Positions 10,001 to 45,680 of a stretch of DNA of 64,000 nucleotides are shown in pieces. Source of the stretch: Macrostomum lignano (Eukaryota); NCBI GenBank assembly GCA_002269645.1, contig NIVC01001029.1, positions 1-64,000 on the forward strand, in the 5' to 3' direction. The position numbers and the translations under genes were made by a program. The notes below the pieces were generated by a model. It had not been told where the DNA came from and ran no database searches. It saw only the letters and a program-made list of their open reading frames with translations. Each line of letters begins with the position of its first letter. The first letter of the stretch is position 1.

Positions 10001-13000
10001 CATCCCCAACTGTCTACCCTGGCATCCCCAACTGTCTACCCTGGCATCCCCAACTGTCTACCCTGGCATCCCCAACTGTCTATAATTTCAGGGTTCTGAG
10101 ATAAAGCCTATATACCAATTTCCTATCTAAGGGCTTCCCAAATATGGAAGCATGGAACTTGAGTGCAACGTTAAATGCCAAGCGGAAGGCTTTGCTTAAT
10201 CCCATGGGAGATTAGCGACAAGCTCAGAAGCTAATCCCTCACGCTGCCGGGAACGGATGCAGAAACTTTTCGAACTGCAGAACTGGCATCGCTAATCTGC
10301 ACCGAATGCTCGGATGGTCAGGAAAGTATTGAGGCTGTTCAGGTACATTTCTGTCTGAGCAGTGGGCAAATCTCAGTGTTCTCATCCTTAGTTTTTCTCC
10401 CCTGCACGACCGGCAGCTTACAGGAATTCGAGCTCCAGCCACGGCTCGGATATTGATGAGGTGAAAGGGACTGAAAGATGGAAGGGGATAATGACGCTGC
10501 GGCAGGATTGCTCCCCTTGTCAGCTCTCTCCTCTTCTCCCTGCCTCTTCTCAACTCAGTCGGACACAGCAGATCGCTCAGTCTGGGGAGGGCGCCACAGG
10601 ATTGAGAACTGCTCTCTGCCGAGTACATTCGAGTAGAGCTCAGTGTAAGCAGTCCTGATTGGCAGTTCGTAATTGCTTTGAGCAGGTGCTTCTGTGCTCA
10701 ATCGTTTGTGACGTAAAAATTGAGCAAGACAGGAGCATCGCGCCCGGTCGGCTCGTGAGGAATTCTCACTGCGCGTTTGAAAACTCGCCTGACACCGCGT
10801 CTATTTGTGGTGTACTTTTCAATCATTAAGGCTTTAATTAGTCAATAAAACATATTGAGTTTCCAATTAGAGCTCTCTAGGCGACTTAATTACAGCTCTG
10901 GGCTTCGGGATGTTAAGATTTTGCCGGGAGTTTCTTTGTTTTCGCGCACGGATGCTGCATTGAGTGGCTCCTTCATCGCGAAAACAGCTTTAGACAGTTG
11001 CAAGTTGTCAATTTTGCAGCCTCAAAGCTACGATGGTCAGGCGCTGAGAAAGTGTACACAGCCAATGTCTCACCTGGCCAACAATTTGTCCACCGTCGAT
11101 GGCGAGGTAGCTGCGCTGGCCTGAGCCAGTGTCCGCTCGGAGGGTCCGCAGCGAGTCTTTCTTGCCGCCGACTGTGAAGAATGCTGCGGTGGTGGGTAGG
11201 CCAATTGATAATGTGTCTCTGCCAATTGATAATGTGTCTCAGCCTATTAATAATGTGTCTCTGCCAATTGATAGTGTGTCTCTGCCAATTGATAATGTGT
11301 CTCTGCCAATTGATAATGTGTCTCAGCCAATTGATAATGTGTCTCAGCCAATTGATAATGTGTCTCAGCCAATTGATAATGTGTCTCTGCCAATTGATAA
11401 TGTGTCTCAGCCAATTGATAATGTGTCTCTGCCAATTGATAATGTGTCTCAGCCAATTGATAATGTGTCTCAGCCAATTGATAATGTGTCTCAGCCAATT
11501 GATAATGTGTCTCTGCCAATTGATAATGTGTCTCAGCCAATTGATAATGTGTCTCAGCCAATTGATAATGTGTCTCAGCCAATTGATAATGTGTCTCAGC
11601 CAATTGATAATGTGTCTCAGCCAATTGATAATGTGTCTCTGCCAATTGATAATGTGTCTCAGCCAATTGATAATGTGTCTCTGCCAATTGATAATGTGTC
11701 TCAGCCAATTGATAATGTGTCTCAGCCAATTGATAATGTGTCTCAGCCAATTGATAATGTGTCTCTGCCAATTGATAATGTGTCTCAGCCAATTGATAAT
11801 GTGTCTCTGCCAATTGATAATGTGTCTCAGCCAATTGATAATGTGTCTCAGCCAATTGATAATGTGTCTCAGCCAATTGATAATGCGTCTCAGCCAATTG
11901 ATAATGTGTCTCAGCCAATTGATAATGTGTCTCAGCCAATTGATAATGTGTCTCAGCCAATTGATAATGTGTCTCAGCCAATTGATAATGTGTCTCTGCC
12001 AATTGATAATGTGTCTCAGCCAATTGATAATGTGTCTCAGCCAATTGATAATGTGTCTCAGCCAATTGATAATGTGTCTCAGCCAATTGATAATGTGTCT
12101 CTGCCAATTGATAATGTGTCTCAGCCAATTGATAATGTGTCTCTGCCAATTGATAATGTGTCTCAGCCAATTGATAATGTGTCTCTGCCAATTGATAATG
12201 TGTCTCTGCCAATTGATAATGTGTCTCAGCCAATTGATAATGTGTCTCAGCCAATTGATAATGTGTCTCAGCCAATTGATAATGCGTCTCAGCCAATTGA
12301 TAATGTGTCTCAGCCAATTGATAATGTGTCTCAGCCAATTGATAATGTGTCTCAGCCAATTGATAATGTGTCTCAGCCAATTGATAATGTGTCTCTGCCA
12401 ATTGATAATGTGTCTCAGCCAATTGATAATGTGTCTCAGCCAATTGATAATGTGTCTCAGCCAATTGATAATGTGTCTCTGCCAATTGATAATGTGTCTC
12501 AGCCAATTGATAATGTGTCTCAGCCAATTGATAATGTGTCTCAGCCAATTGATAATGTGTCTCTGCCAATTGATAATGTGTCTCAGCCAATTGATAATGT
12601 GTCTCAGCCAATTGATAATGTGTCTCTGCCAATTGATAATGTGTCTCAGCCAATTGATAATGTGTCTCTGCCAATTGATAATGTGTCTCAGCCAATTGAT
12701 AATGTGTCTCTGCCAATTGATAATGTGTCTCAGCCAATTGATAATGTGTCTCAGCCAATTGATAATGTGTCTCAGCCAATTGATAATGTGTCTCTGCCAA
12801 TTGATAATGTGTCTCAGCCAATTGATAATGTGTCTCTGCCAATTGATAATGTGTCTCAGCCAATTGATAATGTGTCTCTGCCAATTGATAATGTGTCTCT
12901 GCCAATTGATAATGTGTCTCTGCCAATTGATAATGTGTCTCAGCCAATTGATAATGTGTCTCAGCCAATTGATAATGTGTCTCAGCCAATTGATAATGTG

Positions 13001-16000
13001 TCTCAGCCAATTGATAATGTGTCTCTGCCAATTGATAATGTGTCTCTGCCAATTGATAATGTGTCTCAGCCAATTGATAATGTGTCTCAGCCAATTGATA
13101 ATGTGTCTCTGCCAATTGATAATGTGTCTCAGCCAATTGATAATGTGTCTCAGCCAATTGATAATGTGTCTCAGCCAATTGATAATGTGTCTCAGCCAAT
13201 TGATAATGTGTCTCAGCCAATTGATAATGTGTCTCAGCCAATTGATAATGCGTCTCAGCCAATTGATAATGTGTCTCTGCCAATTGATAATGTGTCTCAG
13301 CCAATTGATAATGTGTCTCTGCCAATTGATAATGTGTCTCAACCAATTGATAATGCGTCTCAGCCAATTGATAATGTGTCTCAGCCAATTGATAATGTGT
13401 CTCAGCCAATTGATAATGTGTCTCTGCCAATTGATAATGTGTCTCAGCCAATTGATAATGTGTCTCAGCCAATTGATAATGTGTCTCTGCCAATTGATAA
13501 TGTGTCTCTGCCAATTGATAATGTGTCTCTGCCAATTGATAATGTGTCTCTGCCAATTGATAATGTGTCTCTGCCAATTGATAATGTGTCTCTGCCAATT
13601 GATAATGTGTCTCTGCCAATTGATAATGTGTCTCAGCCAATTGATAATGTGTCTCTGCCAATTGATAATGTGTCTCTGCCAATTGATAATGTGTCTCAGC
13701 CAATTGATAATGTGTCTCAGCCAATTGATAATGTGTCTCAGCCAATTGATAATGTGTCTCAGCCAATTGATAATGTGTCTCTGCCAGTTGATAATGTGTC
13801 TCTGCCAATTGATAATGTGTCTCAGCCAATTGATAATGTGTCTCAGCCAATTGATAATGTGTCTCAGCCAATTGATAATGTGTCTCAGCCAATTGATAAT
13901 GTGTCTCTGCCAATTGATAATGTGTCTCTGCCAATTGATAATGTGTCTCAGCCAATTGATAATGTGTCTCAGCCAATTGATAATGTGTCTCTGCCAATTG
14001 ATAATGTGTCTCAGCCAATTGATAATGTGTCTCAGCCAATTGATAATGTGTCTCAGCCAATTGATAATGTGTCTCAGCCAATTGATAATGTGTCTCAGCC
14101 AATTGATAATGTGTCTCAGCCAATTGATAATGCGTCTCAGCCAATTGATAATGTGTCTCTGCCAATTGATAATGTGTCTCAGCCAATTGATAATGTGTCT
14201 CTGCCAATTGATAATGTGTCTCAACCAATTGATAATGCGTCTCAGCCAATTGATAATGTGTCTCAGCCAATTGATAATGTGTCTCAGCCAATTGATAATG
14301 TGTCTCTGCCAATTGATAATGTGTCTCAGCCAATTGATAATGTGTCTCAGCCAATTGATAATGTGTCTCTGCCAATTGATAATGTGTCTCTGCCAATTGA
14401 TAATGTGTCTCTGCCAATTGATAATGTGTCTCTGCCAATTGATAATGTGTCTCTGCCAATTGATAATGTGTCTCTGCCAATTGATAATGTGTCTCTGCCA
14501 ATTGATAATGTGTCTCAGCCAATTGATAATGTGTCTCAGCCAATTGATAATGTGTCTCTGCCAATTGATAATGTGTCTCTGCCAATTGATAATGTGTCTC
14601 TGCCAATTGATAATGTGTCTCTGCCAATTGATAATGTGTCTCTGCCAATTGATAATGTGTCTCTGCCAATTGATAATGTGTCTCAGCCAATTGATAATGT
14701 GTCTCAGCCAATTTATAATGTGTCTCTGCCAATTGATAATGTGTCTCAGCCAATTGATAATGTGTCTCAGCCAATTGATAATGCGTCTCAGCCAATTGAT
14801 AATGTGTCTCAGCCAATTGATAATGTGTCTCAGCCAATTGATAATGTGTCTCTGCCAATTGATAATGTGTCTCAACCAATTGATAATGCGTCTCAGCCAA
14901 TTGATAATGTGTCTCAGCCAATTGATAATGTGTCTCAGCCAATTGATAATGTGTCTCTGCCAATTGATAATGTGTCTCAGCCAATTGATAATGTGTCTCT
15001 GCCAATTGATAATGTGTCTCTGCCAATTGATAATGTGTCTCTGCCAATTGATAATGTGTCTCTGCCAATTGATAATGTGTCTCTGCCAATTGATAATGTG
15101 TCTCTGCCAATTGATAATGTGTCTCTGCCAATTGATAATGTGTCTCTGCCAATTGATAATGTGTCTCTGCCAATTGATAATGTGTCTCAGCCAATTTATA
15201 ATGTGTCTCTGCCAATTGATAATGTGTCTCAGCCAATTGATAATGTGTTTCTGCCAATTGAAAATGATAGTGTCTCTACCAATTTATAATGTGTCTCAGC
15301 CAATTGATAATGTGTCTCAGCCAATTGATAATGTGTCTCAGCCAATTGATAATGTGTCTCAGCCAATTGATAATGTGTCTCTGCCAATTGATAATGTGTC
15401 TCAGCCAATTGATAATGTGTCTCAGCCAATTGATAATGTGTCTCAGCCAATTGATAATGTGTCTCAGCCAATTGATAATGTGTCTCAGCCAATTGATAAT
15501 GTGTCTCAGCCAATTGATAATGTGTCTCAGCCAATTGATAATGTGTCTCAGCCAATTGATAATGTGTCTCAGCCAATTGATAATGTGTCTCAGCCAATTG
15601 ATAATGTGTCTCAGCCAATTGATAATGTGTCTCAGCCAATTGATAATGTACGCAGTCATGCGTACAGGCACACACTCACACAGGAGTGTACAGCGGCACT
15701 AAATTAATTTATCGTTAGGCATGTACACTTCACTGCGCCTTGGGGGTTGGCCCTCAATGGCGTTAATTGCACAAGCAGAGCCAAGCCACGATTTCAATTT
15801 AGCCCCAAATTAATGTGACTGCACTTGGAATCGAGCCTGGGCCGCTGGGACATCAGAGCGCCGGGCTAAACTACTGATTGTTCACTGATTGTTCACAGCT
15901 AATCGGTCACTGATTGTTCACAGCTAATCGGTCACTGATTGTTCACAGCTAATCGGTCACTGATTGTTCACAGCTAATCGGTCACTGATTGTTCACAGCT

Positions 16001-19000
16001 AATCGGTCACTGATTGTTCACAGCTAATCGGTCACTGATTGTTCACAGCTAATCGGTCACTGATTGTTCACAGCTAATCGGTCACTGATTGTTCACAGCT
16101 AATCGGTCACTGATTGTTCACAGCTAATCGGTCACTGATTGTTCACAGCTAATCGGTCACTGATTGTTCACAGCTAATCGGTCACTGATTGTTCACAGCT
16201 AATCGGTCACTGATTGGTCACAGCTAATCGGTCACTGATTGGTCACAGCTAATCGATCACTGATTGTTCACAGCTAATCGGTCACTGATTGTTCACAGCT
16301 AATCGATCACTGATTGGGTCACAGCTAATCGATCACTGATTGTTCACAGCTAATCGGTCACTGATTGGTCACAGCTAATCGGTCACTGATTGGTCACAGC
16401 TAATTGTTCGCAATGTGTCGAAAATGAATAATCGCTCACAGCTCGGGTCCGAGTCCTCGGCCGACGCGTCCACGCTGTTGTCCGAATTGATGCGGACCGG
16501 CCGGCCAGTCACCCGGCTGTACAGCTGGATGACGGTGTCCGGTTGGAACAGCCAGGCCAGGGACTGCCAGGCCAGCTTCTCCAGTGGATCCAGCGGAAGT
16601 TCCGGTTGCTGTTTTTGCTGCTGTTGCTGCTGCTCCTGCGGCCGCAGCTCCCGGGTGGTCTTGCCGTCCTCTTCGGCCTCGTCCAGCCACCTTTGTAGGT
16701 GACATTGGGAAAAGGGGTTGCCCGAATGTGCGCACTGAGTGTGCATTCTACGAGTAAATGTACACCGAAATGTACATTATAGAAGTAAATGTACATTCTA
16801 AGTGTAAATGTACATTCTAAGCGCAAATGTACATTCTAAAAGTAAATTTATATTCTAAGAGCAGATGTACATTCATAAGAGCAAATGTACATTCTAAGAG
16901 CAAATGTACATTCTAAGAGCAAATGTACATTCTAAGAGCAAATGTACATTCTAAGAGCAAATGTACATTCTAAGAGCAGATTTGCATTATACTCATAAGA
17001 GCAAATGTACATTCTAAGAGCAGATGTACATTCTAAGAGTAAACGTGCATTTCATAATGAGTACAATGGTAGCAAAGTGCAGAGCATAGAAGTTATCATA
17101 GCCCTCACCTGTGACACAAGAAAGTCACTGGCGCGTCCGGCTTCGATGCCGCAGTCACCTGCACGCTGTCCAGGAACCAGCCGTAGCCGGCGCCTTTGCC
17201 GTCGTGCCCGATGACCAGCTTCTTGATGCGGCCGAGGTACACGGCCTCCAGCTCAAACACGTCAGTCTGGGGAGTACCGGGAGTGTGAGTGGATTTTCAA
17301 ATGCGCCACTCTACGGGCAGCATCTTGAAAAAGAAAGTTTCAAAAGAAAACAACTTGAAGAATGCTGCTCGCGAAATATTCCTGTTGCTGACGGCAGCGT
17401 GAAAATTCAATCCGGTTTTAGCGGCCTAATCCCTATTAGCGCGGATTAGCAGGGAATTAGGGTCAGCCGCTGCGACAGCTGTGAAAAATTCGCGATATTT
17501 ATCCTTAAAGCTGGCGCATTTGTGTCAGGAGTGAGAAAAAATATATTTTATAAATTTTATTCCTCCTGTTTTTGCTTGCTCAGCTCAAAAAATTTTCTGA
17601 GTAAAACAACGCCAGAAAAATCTCTTGATGTTTCGCCGTCGGCTGTCACTTCTGCTGCAGCCGATGCTGCCGCTCTTGCTGCAGCTGCTACTGCCTGACA
17701 TTCAGCCCGCGACCGCCTGCTCCGCGACCTCAGTTCGCGAAATTCAAAGCAAAATTGTGAACGGCAAGCTGGCTGCAATCCGCTGCTCCGACATCAAGGG
17801 AATTCTGCGCGGCGGCTCGCTGATGGACCCGGCAACCTACATCGAGTGCCTGCCGAACAGCACGGAGCACGCCTGCACCGGCGGCGCCCGGTGTCTCGGC
17901 TACCGCTGCGGCTGCCCGGACGGCCTGGTGTACATCGGTGCCCTCGGCTGCACTGACGTGGACGAGTGCTCGCTGAAGCTGGGCGGCCCGGCCTGCACGG
18001 GACCGCAGGATCGGGTCAGCTGCGTGAACCTTCAGGGCGGATTCGCGTGCAACTGCACCCAGCCGGGCCAGCAGTACCACCCGGAGTGGGGCTGCACCGA
18101 CTCGCCCGAGTGCGTCTTCCCCTTCGTCTACAGGGGCAAGCGGTACACCCACTGCACCTCGGCTGACCGCGGCTACCTGTGGTGCGGCCTGAGCGATGAT
18201 GTGGACCGCGACAACCGGTGGGTGGCGTGCCCGCTGAGCTACGGCACCGCGCACTGCGTGTTTCCCACGCGCTACCAGGGCGAGCTTCGGTCCGGCTGCT
18301 TCGTTGACAAGCCGACCGGCAAGCGGCTATGCTCGCTGACCAGCAACTTTGATGCCGATCGGGAGGCTGAGCTATGCATGGAGGTTGCTTAGGCCTACCG
18401 GACGTGTCACCATCAGCAGCTGTCTGTCATCCTGCGTTTTTTTGGTTTCTGGGACAAATCTGTGACTTCTTAATTCCTTCATTTTCAGCGCAGTGTTTTC
18501 GTCGAACGCAGAATTGATAGACTATATGTTTTCATAAATCATTCACTGAGATTTCCAAATTGGCAAGTTGGATTTTAAGTTATAAATGTTTCACAACAAA
18601 GCACCATGATACTCAAGCGCCAACTAAACTCTTTCGTTGTACTGAACTGATCACGCATGAATATAATTAGTGCAACTCAGCTCAGCATTCATCAAAGTAC
18701 GCACTGAATGTTTTTCTGCCATTTACGAGCGTATTTCAAGCTCATGTCCTCACCTGGCCCATTTGAAATGGTTGCTGAGCTCCCGACACCGGCCTTGACA
18801 GCTTTCGCGGCCCGGTGTCTCCGTAGTCGCCGAACAGCACGACGCTGACTGCGGCTTTGGTGCTGGCGTTGAAGCAGCTACCGGTGCGAACCTCGACAGT
18901 GTACTTTTCCACTGCAAGGTTTGGGAGAGTTGGGTTCTTGTGGAACTGCATCTCTGTGGCTTGTACACTTGGTGTGGATTCTTGTGGAATTGCATCTCTG

Positions 19001-22000
19001 TGGCTTGTACAGTTGGTGTGGATTCTTGTGGAACTGCATCTCTGTGGCTTGTACAGTTGGTGTGGGTTCTTGTGGAACTGCATCTCTGTAGCTTGTACAG
19101 TTGGTGTGGGTTCTTGTGGAACTGCATCTCTGTAGCTTGTACAGTTGGTGTGGATTCTTGTGGAATTGCATCTCTGTAGCTTGTACAGTTGGTGTGGATT
19201 CTTGTGGAACTGCATCTCTGTAGCTTGTACAGTTGGTGTGGATTCTTGTGGAATTACATCTCTGTAGCTTGTACAGTTGGTGTGGATTCTTGTGGAACTG
19301 CATCTCTGCAGCTTGTACAGTTGGTGTGGATTCTTCTGGAACTGCATCTCTGTGGCTTGTACAGTTGGTGTGGATTCTTGTGGAACTGCATCTCTGTGGC
19401 TTGTACAGTTGGTGTGGGTTCTTGTGGAACTGCATCTCTGTAGCTTGTACAGTTGGTGTGGGTTCTTGTGGAACTGCATCTCTGTAGCTTGTACAGTTGG
19501 TGTGGATTCTTGTGGAACTGCATCTCTGTAGCTTGTAAAGTTGGTGTGGGTTCTTGTGGAACTGCATCTCTGTAGCTTGTACAGTTGGTGTGGGTTCTTG
19601 TGGAACTGCATCTCTGTAGCTTGTACAGTTGGTGTGGATTCTTGTGGAATTGCATCTCTGTAGCTTGTACAGTTGGTGTGGGTTCTTGTGGAACTGCATC
19701 TCTGTAGCTTGTACAGTTGGTGTGGATTCTTGTGGAATTGCATCTCTGTAGCTTGTACAGTTGGTGTGGATTCTTGTGGAACTGCATCTCTGTAGCTTGT
19801 AAAGTTGGTGTGGGTTCTTGTGGAACTGCATCTCTGTAGCTTGTACAGTTGGTGTGGGTTCTTGTGGAACTGCATCTCTGTAGCTTGTACAGTTGGTGTG
19901 GATTCTTGTGGAATTGCATCTCTGTAGCTTGTACAGTTGGTGTGGATTCTTGTGGAACTGCATCTCTGCAGCTTGTACAGTTGGTGTGGATTCTTCTGGA
20001 ACTGCATCTCTGTGGCTTGTACAGTTGGTGTGGATTCTTGTGGAACTGCATCTCTGTGGCTTGTACAGTTGGTGTGGGTTCTTGTGGAACTGCATCTCTG
20101 TAGCTTGTACAGTTGGTGTGGGTTCTTGTGGAACTGCATCTCTGTAGCTTGTACAGTTGGTGTGGATTCTTGTGGAACTGCATCTCTGTAGCTTGTAAAG
20201 TTGGTGTGGGTTCTTGTGGAACTGCATCTCTGTAGCTTGTACAGTTGGTGTGGGTTCTTGTGGAACTGCATCTCTGTAGCTTGTACAGTTGGTGTGGATT
20301 CTTGTGGAATTGCATCTCTGTAGCTTGTACAGTTGGTGTGGGTTCTTGTGGAACTGCATCTCTGTAGCTTGTACAGTTGGTGTGGGTTCTTGTGGAACTG
20401 CATCTCTGTAGCTTGTACAGTTGGTGTGGATTCTTGTGGAACTGCATCTCTGTAGCTTGTAAAGTTGGTGTGGGTTCTTGTGGAACTGCATCTCTGTAGC
20501 TTGTACAGTTGGTGTGGGTTCTTGTGGAACTGCATCTCTGTAGCTTGTACAGTTGGTGTGGATTCTTGTGGAATTGCATCTCTGTAGCTTGTACAGTTGG
20601 TGTGGGTTCTTGTGGAACTGCATCTCTGTAGCTTGTACAGTTGGTGTGGATTCTTGTGGAATTGCATCTCTGTAGCTTGTACAGTTGGTGTGGATTCTTG
20701 TGGAACTGCATCTCTGTAGCTTGTACAGTTGGTGTGGATTCTTGTGGAATTACATCTCTGTAGCTTGTACAGTTGGTGTGGATTCTTGTGGAACTGCATC
20801 TCTGCAGCTTGTACAGTTGGTGTGGATTCTTCTGGAACTGCATCTCTGTAGCTTGTACAGTTGGTGTGGATTCTTGTGGAATTGCATCTCTGTAGCTTGT
20901 ACAGTTGGTGTGGATTCTTGTGGAACTGCATCTCTGTAGCTTGTACAGTTGGTGTGGGTTCTTGTGGAACTGCATCTCTGTAGCTTGTACAGTTGGTGTG
21001 GATTCTTGTGGAACTGCATCTCTGTAGCTTGTACAGTTGGTGTGGATTCTTGTGGAACTGCATCTCTGTAGCTTGTAAAGTTGGTGTGGGTTCTTGTGGA
21101 ACTGCATCTCTGTAGCTTGTACAGTTGGTGTGGGTTCTTGTGGAACTGCATCTCTGTAGCTTGTACAGTTGGTGTGGATTCTTGTGGAACTGCATCTCTG
21201 TAGCTTGTACAGTTGGTGTGGATTCTTGTGGAACTGCATCTCTGTAGCTTGTACAGTTGGTGTGGATTCTTGTGGAATTACATCTCTGTAGCTTGTACAG
21301 TTGGTGTGGATTCTTGTGGAACTGCATCTCTGTGGCTTGTACAGTTGGTGTGGATTCTTGTGGAACTGCATCTCTGTAGCTTGTACAGTTGGTGTGGGTT
21401 CTTGTGGAACTGCATCTCTGTAGCTTGTACAGTTGGTGTGGGTTCTTGTGGAACTGCATCTCTGTAGCTTGTACAGTTGGTGTGGATTCTTCTGGAACTG
21501 CATCTCTGTGGCTTGTACAGTTGGTGTGGATTCTTGTGGAATTGCACCTCTGTAGTTTGTACAGTTGGTGTGGATTCTTGTGGAATTGCACCTCTGTAGT
21601 TTGTACAGTTGGTGTGGGTTCTTGTGGAATTGCACCTCTGTAGCTTGTACAGTTGGTGTGGGTTCTTGTGGAACTGCATCTCTGTAGCTTGTACAGTTGG
21701 TGTGGATTCTTGTGGAACTGCATCTCTGTAGCTTGTACAGTTGGTGTGGGTTCTTGTGAAACTGCATCTCTGTAGCTTGTACAGTTGGTGTGGATTCTTG
21801 TGGAACTGCATCTCTGTAGCTTGTACAGTTGGTGTGGATTCTTGTGGAACTGCATCTCTGTGGCTTGTACAGTTAGTGTGGGTTCTTGTGGAACTGCATC
21901 TCTGTACAAACTTGAATAGTTATGGATTATTAAGGAACCGGATGCATAAATGTAGAGTTTACAATGGACTTTGAGTTATTTTCATCGATTTTTGCACAGA

Positions 22001-25000
22001 ACCAGAGCTGCATAACGCACTCTCATTGCTCAGCTGTCGCCAGCAAGCCATTTTTCCATCTCAAACAAAGCCGAGGCAAAGTCTCCGAGCTCAAAGCAGT
22101 CAAAAGAGGGCAGCAAAAAAGAAAGCAAAACGGATGAATTAAAAAGCGGCTCTCCAGGACGTGCCCGCCCAGCCCGTCATTCTAAAAGCCCCGGCAACCT
22201 GTGGGTCGCTACATTTTCTCCCTAATTACCCCGCTGCTTAGCCTCTCATTTGCCTGTGTTCTCAATCTTCAGGCGGGGCAGCAGATTGCGGCGGAGGCAG
22301 AGCTTTGCCGGAGGAGGAGGAGGATCGCTCTTTGTCCAAAAATGGCGCAGGGAGGCTGGGGTGATGCGGCATCGCGGAAGAAATCTAATATCCCATAGAA
22401 AGACGCTAGTTGCTGGGGGACGGAGTAGCCGTTCACGAGATAAGCATTGATGTCGGATTCGATTTCATTAATTCCCCCCCAGCCTCCATCGGATTCTCCA
22501 CGGACCTGTCGCCCGAACCGATGGGGGGGTTTCATTTTCCCTATTCGGACAGATTTTCACCTCTGTTGGGTTAATGAGGGCGGGTCAGAGGGGCATGGAT
22601 GGGGAGTTGAGGAAGCAAATTCTGTCGAACGGGGGAGGCAGTGCATTCTAATTAAACATACTGAACTGGCTCGAAGCTATGTAAGAAAATAAAATTGAGC
22701 ATGAGACCCGTGGCGCCCATACAGATACCTATAGATATGCATAATGGTAAAGCAAAGTCCGGGGCAGCGCTAAAGCACACTATGCCCGAAGCCAATCAGT
22801 GCGGCATCCCGGCAGCTGAAGACTTTTCCAACAGTTCTATAATGCCGAGTCCCCGATCCGGCTAGCAGATTAGGGAGTTAATTAAATGCCTGGACTGAGC
22901 CGCGCCAGTTGCCAGGGGGGGATTGACGCATTCGGGGCCTATTAATTACCGCCTCGCGTGCCCCGTGCAGGTTGGAGCGGACCCCTGCCGCACATGACAG
23001 GCTGCCTGTCACTTGAAGGGGAGGCAGGAGAGGCGGCGAGCGAGAGGGTGAGAGCAAACAATACAAATCACCGAGCGAGCTGCAGTCCTGACCTCAGCTC
23101 GGCAACCTCACTCTCGGGATTCACTGAAGCCCTCTCGTCTCAACTCCCACACGGCCGTATCCAAGTGGTTGCCCAGGCAACCTCCGCCGACCAATTTCGG
23201 GATTCAGGAGACGGATAGCTAGTGTTTTCCCCAGCCAGGAAATGAAGAGCTCTCGATGTCAGTAAAAAACAGGATTTGCAAGTGGACTGGCTGTAACTAT
23301 ATATAGTCAGATGGCTGGCTGGGCTATTTACAAATGTCTGATATAGCTCGTATTGTGAGCAAAGAGCGGCTCATTGTGGATATTCATCCTGCAAAAAACT
23401 TGTGATAAAACATACCCCAGATTTATATACTATTTATAGTCACTCTCCACTGCAGCAGTGGTCAGCAGTCCCAGTCACTCATCTCTGCACTCTTCACTGC
23501 AGCAGTGGTCAGCAGTCCCAGTCACTCATCTCTGCACTCTTCACTGCAGGTCAGCAGTCCCAGTCACTCATCTCTGCACTCCGCACTGCAGCAGTGGTCA
23601 GCAGTCCCAGTCACTCATCTCTGCACTCTGCACTGCAGCAGTGGTCAGCAGTCCCAGTCACTCATCTCTGCACTCTTCACTGCAGGTCAGCAGTCCCAGT
23701 CACTCATCTCTGCACTCTTCACTGCAGCAGTGGTCAGCAGTCCCAGTCACTCATCTCTGCACTCTTCACTGCAGGTCAGCAGTCCCAGTCACTCATCTCT
23801 GCACTCCGCACTGCAGCAGTGGTCAGCAGTCCCAGTCACTCATCTCTGCACTCTGCACTGCAGCAGTGGTCAGCAGTCCCAGTCACTCATCTCTGCACTC
23901 TTCACTGCAGGTCAGCAGTCCCAGTCACTCATCTCTGCACTCTTCACTGCAGCAGTGGTCAGCAGTCCCAGTCACTCATCTCTGCACTCTTCACTGCAGG
24001 TCAGCAGTCCCAGTCACTCATCTCTGCACTCCGCACTGCAGCAGTGGTCAGCAGTCCCAGTCACTCATCTCTGCACTCTGCACTGCAGCAGTGGTCAGCA
24101 GTCCCAGTCACTCATCTCTGCACTCCGCACTGCAGCAGTGGTCAGCAGTCCCAGTCACTCATCTCTGCACTCTGCACTGCAGCAGTGGTCAGCAGTCCCA
24201 GTCACTCATCTCTGCACTCTGCACTGCAGCAGTGGTCAGCAGTCCCAGTCACTCATCTCTGCACTCTTCACTGCAGCAGTGGTCAGCAGTCCTAGTCACT
24301 CATCTCTGCACTCTTCACTGCAGCAGTGGTCAGCAGTCCCAGTCACTCATCTCTGCACTCTTCACTGCAGCAGTGGTCAGCAGTCCTAGTCACTCATCTC
24401 TGCACTCTGCACTGCAGGTCAGCAGTCCCAGTCACTCATCTCTGCACTCTGCACTGCAGCAGTGGTCAGCAGTCCCAGTCACTCACTGGGCAGAGGCCTG
24501 GCGCCCTCCCGCACTGCTGGCAGCTCCTTGCTGGGCTCGCAGTCGGGCCGACTGTCCGACAGCCAGCAGTTGAAGTCGAAAGTGAGCTGCTCGGCCGTGT
24601 GCGCGTCCGTCATGACCAGCTGACCGACGCACCAGTCCGGAGCGGGGCCTGAGCAGTCGTGGCTCAGTCGGACTTTCATCACCTCACCGATTGGGCCCGT
24701 GTTAATCTGACAATGTAAAATTTGTTCCTATGTGAACTCAAAATCACGACTGAATAACATTTTTCTGAACATTCTGCGAGGAAAATAATAATTGATTACA
24801 CCTGCCCTAATGACCAGATGTGCAACCGACAGCTCAGCCGCAGCTATTGCGCGGCGCATCTGAAGGCTGCGTACGGCTGTTCAGTCCAAGGACTGGGGGG
24901 GTCGCCACACGCACCCTCAATTACCCCAGCTAATGCTGGCACCCATTTTACAGCTGGGTGAACTGAAGCAATGCAGAGATAAGTGTCTTGCTCAATGACA

Positions 25001-26741
25001 CAAATTGTTCCGAGTGGGTAGAGAATCGAACCCCCGACCTTTCAGTCGATACTTCAAAATATTGACTTTAGTTAATAAAACTCAACCGTAGTTGAAAAAT
25101 GAAAAATGGAGAAGCAGATACGGGGCGACAACAGCTCGCACTAAAGCACACAATAGCCCAGCAAAGTCGCAGATTGACTTTTGCATGCGCAATGTTTGAG
25201 CAAGATTGTACCTGCTGTTGACTCTGTGCCGGAGTTCAATAACTACTGCTCTGTGGGCAAATATAAGCAAATATGCGTCTTGCCAGCTACCTCGAACTCG
25301 TCTTCTTGGCCGGCTTGGAAAGGGTCAACAATGCAGTCGGTTTGGATTGGCATGCTGAGCGCGATGGGCTCCGAGCTGCCCTGGCGGCCGTACACTGTGA
25401 TGAAGACTCGGCTGCTGGTGCCGTGCTCCTCTGGCCCGGACTGGGTGCTCACCCGAACTCGCCACTGACCCTCTGCGGAATGACATTTCAAGTTTCACTG
25501 AGCAGATTTATTTGAGCAATAAAATAACTTATAAAAGACTTAACTATCTGATCCCAGACTCTTCCATGAGCACTCCTCAGATCCCTGAGTGAGTTACCAC
25601 TTCCACTCCTCAGATCCCTGAGTGAGCTACCGCTTCCACTCCTCAGATCCCTGAGTGAGCTACCGCTTCCACTCTTCAGATCCTGAGTGAGCTACCGCTT
25701 CCACTCTTCAGATCCTGAGTGAGCTACTCCTTCAAAGAGATTCTCAAACCCCAAGTTATCTACCGCACCGAATTCAAAAGCTTCATAACCCCGCAGTCAT
25801 CTCACTCGACTTCGAGGCATTCGCCCGGCTGTCTCGATTGTTGTTGACCCGCCTGCTGCCCGCCGGTTGCAGCGACTTGGCGCCGGCGCCGCCTTTGCTA
25901 CCGTCAGCAGCCGGCCCGCCGTTCCAGGCGTTCATCGGCTTGAACTTTTCGGTGCCGGCCACCACCAGGTGATCAGAGCCGTTGTAGATTGCGGATAGGG
26001 ACTCGATCTGCACGGCCGATCAGAATAGGGCTAAGTAGACCAGCTACAGACTGGGGTACACAGCAACGATTCAATAATTTAACTCAGCTCACCGGCTCGC
26101 CGTCCACGGTGTAGAGGCGGCGCACCTGCATCTGGAACATGGCGGACAGGTCGTCCAGCACCTGCTCGTAGTCGCGCACGTTCCGCTTGTTGAGCAGCAC
26201 GATGTGCTTCTTGAACGGTTCGCCGTTCTTTCTAGCGTAAATCCGCTTGCAGTCGGCCTGACGAAACGTCGGCGCGTAAGGCGCCGGCCCAGCCGCGTCC
26301 GGCTCTGAGCCCGGGTAGCTGCGGCTGTCCGGCTGGCTGCGCCTCGGCGCTGGCCGGATCGGGTCCGGCGCGGTACCGTTGCGCGCTTTTCCGCCGGCGC
26401 CACGCCAGGCAGGCGGCGGCGGCAGCGGCTGCTGTTGGCCTGGCAGCGCTCCCGCCCGGCGCTGGTTTGTGGAGCAAACGTAGTGGCCCTGGTTGGCGAA
26501 GTCTTCGACTGAGGCGACACGGTCGCGACCTTTCGGCGTAAAGACGGCGCGGACTCCGTAGCTGAGCTCCGGCATGCGGCCGGTGAGCTCGGTGAGCAGC
26601 GTGTCGAGGCCGCGGTAGCGGTTGGGGTGGATGGCCAGCCGCACGGGGTCCTTGTGCTGCACTCCGTCTCGATGGAAGAAGACAGTTTTAGCCGGACGTG
26701 GCCGGTTCTGCTCATTGCTTGGGCCCAGCTGGGGCAGCGAA

Positions 26742-26777
<36 letters not shown>

Positions 26778-26959
26778 TCCTGTGGTTGATCGCTGTGGCC
26801 GTTTTCCATTTTGCCTTCCTCCAAGTCGAAGATTTGCTCTTGCGTTTCGTCGGTACCTTCTGCGGCTGCTGGAGCTGCCGCCGGAACTGCCTCCTCGTCT
26901 GCGAGCGGCCTATCGGAGGGCGGCGCCGGCTCTGGATCCGGCGCGGCTGCTGAGGACAT
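1055..26959 (-). CDS. RP1: RP1/LOXHD1-like protein (2 doublecortin domains, 3 PLAT/LH2 domains, beta-trefoil-like region); 3' end off window
   Basis: Exons 26959-26093, 26007-25806, 25472-25291, 24706-24487, 18911-18754, 17266-17109, 16690-16440, 11183-11074, 9884-9417, 9332-9146, 8369-7660, 6969-6762, 5118-5041, 4141-4097, 1689-1621, 1083-1055. All GT-AG and phase-compatible, 1314 codons. DCX motifs (KTVFFHRDG...GVRAVFTPKG; RIYARKNGEP...VRRLYTVDG) and PLAT motifs (YTVEVRTG...GDTGPRKL; GHDGKGAGYGWFLDSV; CHRWLD). Orthology to RP1 is inferred from architecture. Confidence 0.88.
1340..1386. repeat. Degenerate telomere-like TTAGG/TTTAGG/TTAGGG tract
   Basis: TTTAGGTTAGGGTTTAGGATTAGGGTTTAGGTTAGGTTTAGG. 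Confidence 0.6.
1621..1689 (-). CDS. RP1-like exon 15 (69 nt)
   Basis: TTGCAG|CC...GAA G|GTAGAA; KALIDDIAEQAARRVQELHDAE. Confidence 0.65.
2008..2392. repeat. About 36-bp minisatellite
   Basis: AATAATCTATAGCACCCACCTCACTCCTGCCCGCAC. Confidence 0.95.
2915..3285. repeat. 48-bp minisatellite built from 16-bp subunits
   Basis: CAAGCAGGTAAATCCACACCCACGTCACTCCACACCCGTGTCACTCCA. Confidence 0.9.
3319..3683 (+). mobile_element. Full-length tRNA-derived SINE (family A)
   Basis: A box TAGCCCAGCGGTAG, B box GGCTCGATTCC, poly-A tail, 17-bp target-site duplication AGACCCATATTATTCAA at 3302-3318 and 3684-3700. Confidence 0.85.
4097..4141 (-). CDS. RP1-like exon 14 (45 nt)
   Basis: TTGCAG|AA...GAC G|GTACGT; NLTEDEDNKQYEED; phase 1 to phase 1. 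Confidence 0.65.
5041..5118 (-). CDS. RP1-like exon 13 (78 nt)
   Basis: TTCGCAG|AC...CCA G|GTGAAC; DVSQATSRLVVEAVSAAVLELQNELP. Confidence 0.72.
5519..6341. repeat. 42-bp minisatellite (about 19 copies)
   Basis: CAGGGCTAGAGGGTTGGCAGCCCCAAGCACAGCTCCCAAATA. Confidence 0.97.
6762..6969 (-). CDS. RP1-like exon 12: PLAT C-half
   Basis: EFSISAVDLGQL...GAGWHCDGLMV...FACGSWLDPGHGDGKTERLL. Confidence 0.85.
7010..7180 (-). mobile_element. Diverged SINE family A-related copy (central core)
   Basis: Shares GTGTACAGCGG...GGCATGTACACT...GCCTTGGGGGTTG with the reverse complement of the 3319 copy. Confidence 0.6.
7401..7570. repeat. About 80-bp two-copy tandem duplication
   Basis: GGTGTACAA.TGATACGT...GTGACTG.CCA.TTCTAAAAATAGAAA occurs twice. 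Confidence 0.7.
7660..8369 (-). CDS. RP1-like exon 11: P/Q-rich linker, PLAT-like segment, PLAT3 N-half
   Basis: ORF 7570-8289 extended to the acceptor at 8370; YTVQVATG...VCLIGERGDSGRR. Confidence 0.85.
8905..9125. repeat. 26-bp minisatellite
   Basis: CCCTATTCACCAGTGAATCATCCGCT. Confidence 0.95.
9146..9332 (-). CDS. RP1-like exon 10
   Basis: GTGDVACYFRV...TLESVRQPGSFVGL...RFFVEVVT; donor T|GTAAGT. Confidence 0.85.
9417..9884 (-). CDS. RP1-like exon 9: beta-trefoil-like repeats
   Basis: AKPSPQTEFRV...VRLFESVVFPDQFLRLKDGVIDCR; CGCAG| and |GTGAGC. Confidence 0.85.
9925..10081. repeat. 22-bp minisatellite
   Basis: TACCCTGGCATCCCCAACTGTC. Confidence 0.95.
11074..11183 (-). CDS. RP1-like exon 8
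   Basis: FFTVGGKKDSLRTLRAD...YLAIDGGQIVGQ; CCGCAG| and |GTGAGA. Confidence 0.8.
11200..15648. repeat. 21-bp minisatellite (about 210 copies, two main variants)
   Basis: GCCAATTGATAATGTGTCTC[A/T]. Confidence 0.99.
15649..15874 (-). mobile_element. SINE family A copy, 3' part lost
   Basis: Close match to the reverse complement of 3330-3560; B box present as GGAATCGAGCC. Confidence 0.8.
15875..16403. repeat. 25-bp minisatellite
   Basis: AATCGGTCACTGATTGTTCACAGCT. Confidence 0.97.
16440..16690 (-). CDS. RP1-like exon 7
   Basis: WLDEAEEDGKTTREL...IQLYSRVTGRPVRINSDNSVDA; phases 2 and 1 fit the neighbouring exons. Confidence 0.85.
16765..17050. repeat. 19-bp minisatellite
   Basis: GCAAATGTACATTCTAAGA. 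Confidence 0.9.
17109..17266 (-). CDS. RP1-like exon 6: PLAT2 C-half
   Basis: TDVFELEAVYLGRIKKLVIGHDGKGAGYGWFLDSVQV...FLCHR; not in the ORF track. Confidence 0.9.
17628..18392 (+). CDS. Nested intronless secreted protein: signal peptide, EGF-like, calcium-binding EGF, 2 fibronectin type II domains
   Basis: Hydrophobic N-terminus; DVDEC...CVNLQGGFACNC cbEGF consensus; CVFPFVYRGKRYTHCT...WC...WVAC FN2 consensus plus a second, diverged FN2; GC-rich codons; ATG at 17628. Confidence 0.88.
   Translation: MFRRRLSLLLQPMLPLLLQLLLPDIQPATACSATSVREIQSKIVNGKLAAIRCSDIKGILRGGSLMDPATYIECLPNSTEHACTGGARCLGYRCGCPDGLVYIGALGCTDVDECSLKLGGPACTGPQDRVSCVNLQGGFACNCTQPGQQYHPEWGCTDSPECVFPFVYRGKRYTHCTSADRGYLWCGLSDDVDRDNRWVACPLSYGTAHCVFPTRYQGELRSGCFVDKPTGKRLCSLTSNFDADREAELCMEVA
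18754..18911 (-). CDS. RP1-like exon 5: PLAT2 N-half
   Basis: EKYTVEVRTG...VVLFGDYGDTGPRKL...PFQMGQ; only the last 158 nt of the 1055-aa repeat ORF are real. Confidence 0.9.
18932..21906. repeat. 44-bp minisatellite (about 67 copies)
   Basis: TTGTACAGTTGGTGTGG[A/G]TTCTTGTGGAA[C/T]TGCATCTCTGT[A/G]GC. Confidence 0.99.
22950..22995 (-). CDS. Candidate alternative first coding exon of the RP1-like gene (MCGRGPLQPARGTRG)
   Basis: ATG at 22995; donor G|GTAATT in phase 1 matching the exon starting at 18911; long pyrimidine tract and AG at 23006/23012; X-box about 170 nt upstream. Confidence 0.4.
23168..23181. promoter_or_regulatory. RFX X-box, perfect consensus
   Basis: GTTGCC-CA-GGCAAC. Confidence 0.6.
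23445..24486. repeat. 47/41-bp minisatellite
   Basis: ACTGCAGCAGTGGTCAGCAGTCCCAGTCACTCATCTCTGCACTCTTC plus a 6-bp-deleted variant. Confidence 0.97.
24487..24706 (-). CDS. RP1-like exon 4: PLAT1 C-half
   Basis: INTGPIGEVMKVRLSHD...FDFNCWLSD; donor A|GTGAGT. Confidence 0.88.
24799..25048 (-). mobile_element. CORE-type tRNA SINE (family B), 5' end eroded
   Basis: Near-identical to the 32360 copy; CORE-like segment and B box. Confidence 0.75.
25291..25472 (-). CDS. RP1-like exon 3: PLAT1 N-half
   Basis: GQWRVRVST...VFITVYGRQGSS...FQAGQEDEFE; canonical splice sites. Confidence 0.88.
25560..25735. repeat. 33-bp minisatellite
   Basis: CACTCCTCAGATCCCTGAGTGAGCTACCGCTTC. Confidence 0.9.
25806..26007 (-). 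CDS. RP1-like exon 2: end of DCX2
   Basis: GCAG|ATC ... TCG A|GTGAG; IESLSAIYNGSDHLVVAGTEKFK. Confidence 0.85.
26093..26959 (-). CDS. RP1-like exon 1: DCX1, polyQ tract, start of DCX2
   Basis: ORF 26084-26959; donor CCG|GTGAGC; acceptor-like site just upstream of the ATG at 26976. Confidence 0.9.
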
Positions 26960-27221
26960 CGAGGCGGCTGCTCAACTGCCAGCGGCAATGGGGGAACCAA
27001 CGCAGTAGGGTGAGGGTCAGTTGCAACTAGTTTGCTTGTCCACCAGAATGTTGGTAGCAAGAGGCTACTCCACGAGGCAAGCGGGCTGGAGGGAGAGTGG
27101 AAACAGTGGAAGAGCTGAGGCGAACGGGGAGAGTGCGGAGAGAGGAGAGTCGCGTCGAGCTGAGCGCGCAGTTGCTTAAATAAATGATTAGAGACACTTC
27201 ACAAGGCTTGCTGCGCCATCG

Positions 27222-27905
27222 GTTGCCAATGACAACCACCTGGCACGCCAGTGCAGATGCGTATTGGGGTTGGCTGGTGGAGCTACTGGGGGTAGGGAAG
27301 ACCAAGTTTAGGACCAAAGGGCGCAAATCTGATCCCCGAAGCGCTGCGCAGACAATGGCTCTTCCTCTCTATCAATTCTCTCTCTGTGTTTCTATTTCTC
27401 TCGCCACCCTTTCGCGCGGGCGCCTTCCAAATGCCATGGCAACCAGGGGGGGGGGTCTATTGAGTGGCAGCTGACCCAATAAAAGTAATATGGTACCCCT
27501 AATTCCGTCGTTGCCGGTCCGCCTGACTTTCATAGCCAATTCTCAATATGCAAAGCGCACTGTCCCCGGCTCCGCCCGTGCGAATTGGGCAAATGGAAAG
27601 GCAGGGAGAGACGGAGAATCAAAGACCGGAGTCGCCATGGAGCCTGAGCAGCCCAGGGCGGCCGATTGGAGTGGCGCAGGTGGGGGTCTGGCTTTGATTA
27701 CCGAGTGGGGAATTAGTCCCAGCTACAAACTGACTTCTCTGGTTCAATCCGGAGCGCCAGCGGGCTGCAACCAGCGCCCTCCTGTCCGGCTTTTATTCTT
27801 TGAAGTGGCGACGGGACAATTTTTAGAGGCGCCACACAGCAGTGCTGGATAATCAATTGCGGCCGAGGCGCAGCACCCCCGTTGCCATGGGGTTGCCATG
27901 GTCGC
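27222..27905. promoter_or_regulatory. Cluster of RFX X-box-like motifs upstream of the RP1-like gene
   Basis: GTTGCCAATGACAAC at 27222; ATGCCATGGCAAC at 27431; GTCGCCATGGAG at 27631; GTTGCCATGGGGTTGCCATGG at 27881. Confidence 0.55.
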
Positions 27906-30455
27906 TTTGCGTAGCTAGACAATTTCTGTGAACCGGAACCGGGTCTCGTTGACTTTTGATGAAAACATTTTGTTCAAGAGCGGAACCCTCTGGTGGCCTA
28001 TGTGTTTACATTCGTCCCTCGTGCTTGGTTGACAGGCAGTTGATGGTTAGGTGGCTCAAGTTGACCAACTGACACTGAAATACTCTGTCAGCTTGTCAAA
28101 CATTCTGAATATTCGTAAAGCATGCTCTCAATAATATACAGAGGAAAATGCAAAAAACTCCCTAGAGCTACTAGAGCCACCAAAAGACACCAATTAAGAG
28201 ATCCCTGAGTCGAGTTGAGATAGAGTAACACCGTGGGCTGGCCAAGATAAAGTTCCTCGTTAGTACGAGCGTAGTTAGGCTTGAAAACAAGAGGCTTCTA
28301 CTTATGTTCAAAGTTAGGTATGTTAGCATTTTAATGGCATTACCATAGAGTGGAGCGTAGAAATTCATAGGAAAAACTATTGGGATGCATTAAAACAAAG
28401 TAAACGACTTTCTAAAAAAATTCCTTAAAATCATCGTAGCACAGAACCTGAAAACTTAATTTTTAAACTTGAGCTTTAAACAGTGGTTTATTAAGTAACT
28501 GATTGAACTTAATCCAATTACTTCCAATGTTTTAAATTGTCTTTTGTTTAAGTACACATACTTTTTGAGTCACATATCGTTAAAATAACTGTTTGAAACG
28601 GTAACGCAAATAACAGCGATATAGTAGGTGGAAAGCAATTCAAATAGTTTTAAATTTACAAAACGACTTGTCCCTAATAAATTCTAATCTCTTCCTAATT
28701 CCATCCTGAGACTCGTGGAGAATTCTTTAATGAATTGGACAGGCCTGTGTTATTTGTCTTTTAATGTTAATTAAATTTGATTAGTAGAAAAGCAGTCTTT
28801 ACAATGAATCTACACACATATTTTTCTACCATTTAAAAATTAATGACAATTTAATAACTTGAAGAATAATTGTTTTGTAAGAGATTAAATATTCTGGTCA
28901 GAAGGTACTTTGTTGGCGTCCAAATTAATTTTATCTTTTAGCCAAATAAGTTTCCCTGATACATTGTGTTTACGCTTCTGTAGTATGTTCATTTTAATAT
29001 TGCAATATACTATGTTGTGTATTGTGCATAGTATTGTACGATTATTGACAGTCTGTGGAGCAGTCTTGAATTTCGGATTTTTGCTGGCTCGCTTCTAGTT
29101 TTACTTTGTTTGAAACATGAATTTATAATACTCGTACTACAGTTATAAGTTAACAAACATGAGACAGCTTATTCGACTTCGTACCACTAAACTATTGCAG
29201 CCTATATAAAAATTAATTTTTGCCAAACTGTCAATGATAATAAGTGCAAACGGGAAATCACAAAATGAAAGAGCAATAATACGAGCATGATTTTTTTTGC
29301 CTTTGCTTTTTTCTTTTTAAATATACAAACAAAAGAAACAAAAAGATATATCTTACCATTTTATGAAAACCAGAATAGTATTTTAATTTCTTTGCCACCT
29401 GCTTGCAAAAAAATGAGTCATACACTGCGCGGCAAATAACTCGGTAATTTTGAAAAATTGCTTGTTCTATTTACGTTTTATCCGTTTACTAAAACAAAAT
29501 CTTTACAAATTACAGCACAAATCGTGTAAAAAATTAGTTTGAATTAAAAATTATAGTCCAATTTCATTAGGAATTAATTTATTTTCATTACAAATGTAAT
29601 CTAGGAGCTTCACGAATCAGTGGATAAGTTAATTGTTACGTTCTAGTAGCTTGGGCTTGATTTAGAATTTTTTAAGCGGTCAAGTCTAAACATCCGTCAG
29701 TATTACAGTGTTAACTTAGTTGTAATAGCAAAAAGGATTGGTTAACAATTGTTTAATAATGTTACTAAATTGTTTTACAATTCGGACACGAACAATTCAA
29801 AATTAATAAATTAGAATAATACCGGGTGGCGCATAATTAACTTTACAAATTTGAAACTTTTAGTCTATGTCGATGTGTATACATGTACGAGTAGTTACTT
29901 ATGCGCCCCTCGGGTATATGTATTGAATTGTGTATATATACCTATACCTAAATGAGCTAACGATCTACTAAAAAAATTCCTTGCTTGCAATTAGGTACTC
30001 GTAGATATAGTCCCAGAACTCAACAGTATGAGAAGGCGTAGTTGGATGGAAGCTAATTTAGGACGACTTAATAGAAGGAAAACTTGTAGAAAATATTTTT
30101 ATAAAACCTAAATTCGCGAAGTGCGAGTACTTTAAAGCTATACAAACTTTTCGCCAGTGCGAACTCGGAGCTGTTCCGATGTTTTTTTGGCTTTGTCTTT
30201 GCTTAATCTTTTGGATGCGGTTCAGCAACCATCAGGAAACAGAAGTGAAAAAAACTGTTTATGAGGGAAATTATTTGCAATACCGATATACAACTGCTGA
30301 GCGTGAACGGCAAATTTCGGCGAATGTGATTCGAACTGCTTAGCAGAGTCGTGAATACTGGAAGAGCCATTCTTGCAGAAGTAACAGCTTTCCATGAGAA
30401 AGCAGCTATGTAGTGAACTCCCCAGATTCAATGCCTTGAAGGGGGGGGGGGGGCA

Positions 30456-32359: not shown

Positions 32360-32625
32360 ACACCTGCCCTAATGGGCAGATGTGCAACCGACAGCTCAGC
32401 CGCAGCTATTGCGCGGCGCATCTGAAGGCTGCGTCCAAGGACTGGAGGGTCGCTACACACACCCTCAATTACCCCAGCCAATGCCGGCACCCATTTTACA
32501 GCTGGGTGAACTGAAGCAATGCAGAGATAAGTGCCTTGCTCAAGGACACAAACTGTTCCAGTGGGATCAGGAATCGAACCCCCAACCTTTCAGTTGTGAT
32601 TCCGACGCTCTACCACTTTGTCTCC
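32360..32625 (-). mobile_element. CORE-type tRNA SINE (family B)
   Basis: Minus strand: GTGGTAGAGCG A box, GGTTCGATTCC B box, GTGTCCTTGAGCAAGGCACTTA...CAGCTGTAAAATGGG resembling the MIR/CORE domain. Confidence 0.8.
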
Positions 32626-41783: not shown

Positions 41784-41885
41784 GCTGCATTCTGGGGGGG
41801 AGGGGCAGAAGCAGATGGCAAGTGTTTTAGACAACACTCCATCACATAATAAAAATCGATTACACATAAAATATGAAGTACTCAC

Positions 41886-41966
41886 CGCGTAAGTCTTATT
41901 GTATGTCTCAGTTTCAGCAACAAAAATCCGGTTGGCTAAACTATTAGCTGTTTTGCTAGTGGAGTT
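41886..41966 (-). other. Probable 5' UTR exon of the nuclear receptor
   Basis: TTTCAG| and GCG|GTGAGT; the intron ends at the acceptor at 41792; not in frame with the CDS. Confidence 0.5.

Positions 41967-44818: not shown

Positions 44819-45680
<862 letters not shown>

Follow-up and report, generated by a model that had tools for sequence, protein, structure and literature searches.

An exact RFX-binding motif (X-box) is located in intron 4 of an RP1-family gene of the flatworm Macrostomum lignano. The motif, at positions 23168-23181, is a genuine consensus sequence and a predicted RFX site. The window, i.e. the whole 64,000-nt stretch of DNA that was analysed, corresponds to bases 1-64000 of contig NIVC01001029.1 (assembly GCA_002269645.1). 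The intron-4 X-box and three further half-sites might together constitute an RFX-bound cis-regulatory module of this gene, and the chances of this reading are judged to be about even. An earlier sequence-only reading of the same DNA had proposed that the X-box belongs to a hidden internal promoter with an in-frame first exon, which would produce a PLAT isoform without the DCX domains; the 46-nt segment in question looks like a chance ORF rather than a conserved coding exon. For the gene itself we infer RFX binding, an enhancer function of the module, and ciliary expression. Genes of this class are typically regulated by RFX/DAF-19.

The minus-strand host gene in the window encodes an RP1-family protein with two DCX domains, PLAT repeats and a beta-trefoil region. 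Two duplicate loci, L003 (NIVC01003168.1) and L004 (NIVC01003512.1), match the window at about 96-98% identity across the region of interest; the diverged paralog L001 (NIVC01004725.1) shares about 73% nucleotide identity in the exons. The annotated protein of the L003 copy (P0026; PAA52898.1, BOX15_Mlig026803g1) has 1291 aa, with the ATG of exon 1 as its start. Where exons 4 and 5 meet, this protein reads GARPLPMEKYTVEV (also given as RPLPMEKYTVEV and AVREGARPLPMEKYTVEVRTGS), i.e. exon 4 is joined directly to exon 5. The junction search against P0026 thus bore out the gene model, the intron numbering and the phases of exons 4 and 5 in the sequence-only reading. The coordinates of the relevant features are listed in Table 1.

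Domain searches of P0026 detected Pfam DCX in two stretches (E=5e-29), and the PDB matches included the N- and C-DCX domains of doublecortin. PLAT 1 is encoded by exons 3 and 4, and PLAT 2 by exons 5 and 6. The Pfam PLAT match begins at residue 495 (EKYTVEV), i.e. the start of exon 5 lies at the PLAT boundary. Residues 650-762 were assigned to Pfam FGF, with PDB matches to beta-trefoil structures; this FGF-like beta-trefoil region and further PLAT repeats are encoded by later exons (Pfam and PDB matches). The DCX-PLAT isoforms of vertebrate RP1 are collinear with the flatworm protein (query coverage 97-98%, E down to 1e-152, same Pfam set). The search with exon 1 returned a diverged M. lignano DCX protein as its sole match, and UniRef contains M. 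lignano PLAT fragments identical to exons 6 and 7 of the window. A small nested gene is also located at 17628-18392 in the window. The literature search yielded no paper about Mlig026803, the gene itself, or about PLAT isoforms of RP1. The 44-bp satellite in the 3' part of intron 4 contains minus-strand open reading frames, which are due to its A/C-rich composition.

Table 1. Positions in the window of the features of the RP1-family gene, its intron 4 and its 5' promoter block
Feature	Position	Strand	Basis and remarks
5' promoter block	26960..27960	-	5 RFX half-sites and X-box-like motifs
X-box-like GCGACCATGGCAAC	27899-27886	-	promoter block
X-box-like GTTGCCATGGCATT	27443-27430	-	promoter block; kept in L003 and L004
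X-box-like GTTGTCATTGGCAAC	27236-27222	-	promoter block; kept in L003 and L004
Exon 1	26093..26959	-	start codon and most of both DCX domains; Pfam DCX E=6.7e-25; P0026 residues 1-290 map there
Exon 4	24487..24706	-	second half of PLAT 1; donor CCCA|GTGAGT, phase 1; junction search against P0026
Intron 4	18912..24486	-	5575 nt; junction search against P0026
47-bp satellite	23441..24485	.	22.9 copies (TRF); 5' part of intron 4, adjoins exon 4 donor
Unique core of intron 4, 1.5 kb, between the two satellites	21907..23440	-	TRF limits; candidate RFX-responsive cis-regulatory module
Palindromic RFX X-box GTTGCCCAGGCAAC, core of the 16-bp palindrome GGTTGCCTGGGCAACC	23168..23181	.	exact consensus match; identical in L003 and L004
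GTGAGG	23111-23106	-	donor-like
Second GTTGCC half-site, context GAGGTTGCCGAGC	23101..23106	-	62 nt downstream of X-box; kept in L003 and L004
GTGATT	23071-23066	-	donor-like
Pyrimidine-rich tract, ~45 nt	23012..23056	-	acceptor-like; ends caAG|T (next base 23011), then gacAG|G (next base 23005)
Proposed coding start, 46 nt, MCGRGPLQPARGTRG + G	22950..22995	-	in window copy; judged a chance ORF
Donor-like GTAATT	22944..22949	-	overlaps TAATTAAT, a homeodomain-type motif
44-bp satellite	18931..21906	.	67.6 copies (TRF); 3' part of intron 4, adjoins exon 5 acceptor
Exon 5	18754..18911	-	PLAT 2 start; acceptor ttgcag|TG; phase 1 in, phase 0 out

The X-box claimed for intron 4 is present and exact. 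It reads GTTGCC-CA-GGCAAC, fits the X-box pattern GTNRCC(N0-3)RGYAAC, and lies within the intron 3.8 kb downstream of the start codon. The sequence GTTGCCCAGGCAAC has its sole exact match in the 64-kb window at this place; about 0.004 exact matches are expected per window of this size, and none was found in 100 shuffles. The general consensus GTNRCCNNRGYAAC also matches only at 23168-23181, on both strands since the site is palindromic. X-box-like sites at 43513 and 50727 have two mismatches each, and the count of such sites in the window is at the chance level; the site at 50727 is situated within a GPCR exon ORF. The host of the X-box is the RP1-family DCX/PLAT gene, which is presumably expressed in ciliated cells of M. 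lignano. No paper on X-boxes in flatworms was found in the literature search.

GTTGCC/GGCAAC hexamers number 30 in the window, as expected, and 10 of these 30 are concentrated in two ~1-kb blocks. Five RFX half-sites (23176, 23168, 23101, 22908 and 22193) are in the intron-4 core (21907-23440), and the 5' promoter block has five within 1 kb upstream of exon 1. The expected number is 0.8 in each block, and P=0.0015 for each was obtained from local dinucleotide shuffles. Two clusters of this kind occurred in 0.7% of the shuffles of the window's unique (non-satellite) sequence. The cluster thresholds were set after the data had been seen. The X-box itself accounts for two of the five intronic half-sites, and by our own calculation the remaining three are marginal when taken alone (Poisson P ~0.05 from the mean of 0.8). 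The enrichment of the promoter block is independent of what the sequence-only reading had observed, and RFX control of the gene is therefore plausible. That reading had described two RFX promoters at this locus. Since the promoter block and the intron-4 block are both enriched in half-sites, the DNA can fairly be described as containing two modules of RFX type; the in-frame coding first exon that was attached to the second of them did not hold up.

The intron-4 module would act together with the half-site-rich 5' promoter, and both modules would promote the expression in ciliated cells of this gene, which is microtubule-associated and presumably ciliary. The module in intron 4 would have enhancer activity, or might provide a weak or alternative site of transcription initiation. 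Other identities of the intron-4 block were rejected: an ncRNA gene, as no Rfam match at E<=1 was found; a transposon or repeat origin, as neither the window nor L001 has another copy; and a hidden protein-coding gene, as the 88-aa and 86-aa ORFs have no Pfam match.

In the three-way alignment, L003 and L004 retain the X-box, the ATG and the GGTAATT. Both are without one A of CTCCAACCTG (22973/22972) relative to the window, and this 1-bp deletion leaves a segment of 45 nt that ends in phase 0 and is out of frame with exon 5. The GTGAGG of the window is GCGAGG in L003 and L004. The divergence between the copies is 1.9-2.9% in non-exon DNA and 0.3-0.7% in exons, and one indel per 46 nt corresponds to the neutral rate. 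The three copies are identical over the 189 bp within which the X-box is located; other non-exonic identical runs reach 175-375 bp, so the identity around the X-box says nothing about constraint, and an excess of conservation at this place was rejected. In L001, intron 4 (1 kb) contained no alignable counterpart to the window intron 4 in a sensitive blastn search, and no half-site cluster, only a loose GTTGCTAAGCAAT.

All the sequence features named in the sequence-only reading are present on the minus strand, with coordinates within 1-2 nt. The AG dinucleotides that close the pyrimidine tract are at 23013-23012 and 23007-23006; the ATG is at 22995-22993, the last base of the proposed exon is 22950, and the 46 nt end in phase 1. 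In the window copy, these 46 nt joined to exon 5 (first base 18911) would read MCGRGPLQPARGTRG-VEKYTVEV in frame. The claim that use as a cassette would shift the frame was also right: the length of a cassette exon would be 62 or 56 nt in the window copy, against 61 or 55 nt for L003 and L004. No value is divisible by 3, and such an exon was rejected.

That an RFX-driven internal promoter makes this segment a first coding exon, spliced to exon 5 to give a DCX-less PLAT protein, is very improbable. Some points are in its favour: 172 nt separate the X-box from the first ATG downstream, a promoter distance like that in C. elegans, the ATG has a pyrimidine tract and an AG in front of it, the frame is right in the window copy, and the start of exon 5 coincides exactly with a PLAT domain boundary. 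The ATG-free stretch of 172 nt is mildly unusual, being found in 3.7% of shuffles, and was spotted post hoc. However, when the 1.2 kb that follow the X-box were shuffled by dinucleotides, 621 of 2000 sequences (31%) had a phase-1 GT[AG] donor between their first ATG and its stop, and the real sequence of the same 1.2 kb has three further ATG/GTR combinations in phase 1. The proposed donor, GCG|GTAATT, has G at -1, A at +3 and +4, and T at +5; being without the +5 G, it is off-consensus and weak, though not impossible. Among the 14 donors of this gene, 10 are GTGAG and one is GTAAG, and the cis-donor motif GT[G/A]AG was reported for about 65% of M. lignano donors (PMC8629364). The upstream GTGAGG is not retained in the sister copies, and L001 has no counterpart of the segment. 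No protein beginning with MCGRGPLQ or at the exon-5 start was found in a database of 5.8 billion sequences, and the annotation of the two sister copies places no gene within intron 4. The frame break in two of the three gene copies contradicts the hidden first exon and the DCX-less isoform. The in-frame coding first exon was thus not borne out by any of the tests, given the shuffle frequency, the 1-bp indel, the weak donor and the lack of a matching protein or gene call, and the sequence evidence argues against a conserved coding start for a DCX-less isoform.

An internal promoter as such, without the coding exon, is possibly present as a candidate. Transcription would start near the X-box, and the 5' end would be non-coding or SL-trans-spliced; we regard this as unlikely, though less so than the coding exon. 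In M. lignano, the spliced leader ends in ATG, 30% of the genes are trans-spliced, and the acceptor motif is [T/C]TNCAG (PMC8629364). An acceptor-like pyrimidine tract does exist here. An SL acceptor should have no cis donor ahead of it; in the window copy, donor-like GTGAGG and GTGATT lie upstream of the tract. The candidate acceptors TTCAAG|T and TGACAG|G match the motif only in part. By our own translation, L003 and L004 have an uninterrupted frame over the 55 nt that follow the second AG, with its end in phase 1. In these two copies, an SL AUG at gacag|GCAGCC (the equivalent of 23005) would be in frame with exon 5, whereas in the window copy this holds for the internal ATG alone. We estimate the probability of an open frame with the required phase at p ~0.14. 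The frame agreement varies between the copies as by chance, and such differing routes are what chance predicts, which makes this a reading of low probability. A true second RFX promoter that yields a DCX-less PLAT/beta-trefoil protein, with the internal AUG used in the window copy and the SL AUG in the sister copies, is accordingly a long shot; if it were true, a recently duplicated flatworm RP1 gene would have been caught changing its isoform-initiation route.

The more serious alternative to the intronic module is a chance motif, i.e. a palindrome with neighbouring half-sites that have no function, in an intron 4 of neutral DNA between satellites. This explanation is somewhat unlikely. The genome of M. 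lignano comprises several hundred Mb, and by our own calculation a motif with 12 specified bases is expected tens of times in a genome of this size. There is no surplus conservation around the X-box, the motif is missing from the paralog L001, and there is an ascertainment bias because the earlier reader had scanned for just such motifs. On the other side are the low expectation for a 64-kb window and the shuffles cited above, the three additional half-sites in the intron-4 block, and the independent half-site enrichment of the promoter block of the same gene. Moreover, the X-box is found in the window's one gene with a ciliary-type architecture. The X-box and its neighbouring half-sites most likely mark an intronic RFX-responsive module of the gene, a common type of element at a new location.

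If the X-box is functional, this would be a flatworm case of RFX control of an RP1-type axonemal gene, with RFX sites far inside an intron in addition to those of the promoter. Such sites would be useful for the annotation of the Macrostomum ciliary regulon, and their presence would be unsurprising. A DCX-less isoform, if true, would bear on the separate deployment of the microtubule-binding and PLAT modules.

The X-box promoter motifs of RFX/DAF-19 in C. elegans, Drosophila and vertebrates have the same 14-bp imperfect-palindrome consensus (GTNRCC-NN-RGYAAC) as the flatworm site. Some RFX/DAF-19 targets contain multiple X-boxes, with extra 5' sites as in the flatworm gene. The usual X-box of these targets precedes the first ATG by no more than a few hundred bp, whereas the flatworm site is intronic and 3.8 kb past the start codon. 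A known parallel to the coding-first-exon model is DCLK1, a DCX-domain gene with internal promoters that give short isoforms without the microtubule-binding DCX repeats; the short DCLK1 transcripts have been experimentally established; however, the frame of the flatworm candidate start is not conserved.

LOXHD1 is a stereocilia protein that consists entirely of PLAT repeats. Tandem PLAT repeats are common to LOXHD1 and the flatworm protein, and some bird relatives are labelled "LOXH1 protein, partial", which is a homology-based annotation. The best full-length matches of the flatworm gene are nevertheless RP1 isoforms, and the gene is not an ortholog of LOXHD1. The sequence-only reading had expected an RP1-like form and a LOXHD1-like form from one locus. 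The RP1-like DCX and PLAT architecture was recovered by Pfam; the LOXHD1-like, PLAT-only form was not, as the beta-trefoil region is encoded downstream of exon 5 and the best matches are RP1 proteins.

Vertebrate RP1 (oxygen-regulated protein 1) binds the ciliary axoneme, and the canonical retinal isoform is without the PLAT part. The long predicted isoforms of vertebrate RP1 have the same order as the flatworm protein, i.e. two DCX domains, PLAT repeats, a beta-trefoil and more PLAT. They match with E-values to 1e-150 across 97-98% of the PLAT/trefoil query, yet the identity is 27-30%. Pfam detected three PLAT stretches in the 1291-aa flatworm protein and six in macaque RP1. The DCX-PLAT-trefoil architecture shared by the flatworm and the long predicted vertebrate isoforms suggests that this is the ancestral form of RP1.

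No called product was on record for the RP1-like gene on the window contig (positions 1-26959, minus strand). The gene was annotated in both near-identical copies, NIVC01003168.1 and NIVC01003512.1, as proteins of 1291 and 1319 aa, a difference of 28 aa. The junction of exon 4 and exon 5 (24487 / 18911-18910) splits an ATG codon as A|TG, and the PLAT-2 exon of the canonical protein therefore begins with a methionine (…PLPMEKYTVEV).

The introns of this gene are occupied by large satellites, which adjoin the splice sites, and the array length varies among the three gene copies. For example, intron 4 has a length of 5.6 kb in the window, compared with about 3.2 kb in NIVC01003512.1. The 44-bp array has three minus-strand frames without a stop codon, and one ORF of 1055 aa continues directly into exon 5. 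The dispersed element of about 185 bp is located in intron 3 of the window gene, whereas it is found in intron 4 of the diverged paralog L001 (NIVC01004725.1). Its end is similar to a tRNA T-arm (GGTTCGATTC-like), and the element looks like a SINE or MITE.

Features of the window and of the diverged paralog L001
Feature	Location	Strand	Remarks
Nested single-exon gene, intact	window 17628-18392	+	within intron 5 of the RP1-like gene, opposite strand
44-bp satellite array	window 18931-21906		intron 4
47-bp satellite array	window 23441-24485		intron 4
Long satellite array	window 10973-15707		intron between 16440 and 11183
Dispersed element, ~185 bp	window 24864-25048; window 32433-32597; L001 14538-14720		88-94% identity between loci
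TAATTA/TAATC homeodomain-type motifs GGTAATTAAT, TTTAATTAACTCCCTAATC, GGTAATTAGG	window 22885-22949 (-), and 22230, 22470		intronic block shared with the X-box
Two X-box right halves in tandem, CCATGGCAAC CCCATGGCAAC, 11 bp apart	window 27876-27899	-	~930 bp upstream of the start codon
Consensus X-box GTTACCATGGCAAC	L001 18263-18276		coding exon of the diverged paralog, beta-trefoil region
Nuclear receptor gene	window 37800-41975	-	neighbouring gene; zf-C4 exon 41460-41975
Assembly gap (Ns)	window ~45.2-45.6 kb (about 45200-45630)
Secretin-family GPCR gene	window 50380-54883	-	neighbouring gene; 7tm_2 exons 50380-50748 and 54587-54883

The product of the nested gene is 254 aa long; it has a signal-peptide-like N-terminus and carries one EGF_CA domain together with two domains of the fibronectin type II family. 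All three gene copies have this gene annotated, and the protein sequence is identical among them. Numerous additional micro- and minisatellites are present past 47 kb in the window.

One of the homeodomain-type motifs overlaps the GTAATT that the sequence-only reading had proposed as a splice donor in intron 4. The occurrence of these motifs and the X-box in one intronic block would fit a candidate composite enhancer. The tandem right halves belong to the promoter block of the RP1-like gene, which is rich in half-sites. The best X-box within L001 is the exonic one, which translates in frame as V-T-M-A-T; its presence inside a coding exon is probably coincidental.

The predicted vertebrate RP1 isoforms among the database matches (P0006-P0016, P0020 and P0022) also contain PLAT and FGF-like domains downstream of the DCX pair. 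A paper on the DCX-PLAT-trefoil architecture of RP1 was not found in the literature search. The domain order of these isoforms is collinear with that of the flatworm protein, which suggests that DCX-PLAT-trefoil is the ancestral architecture of RP1.
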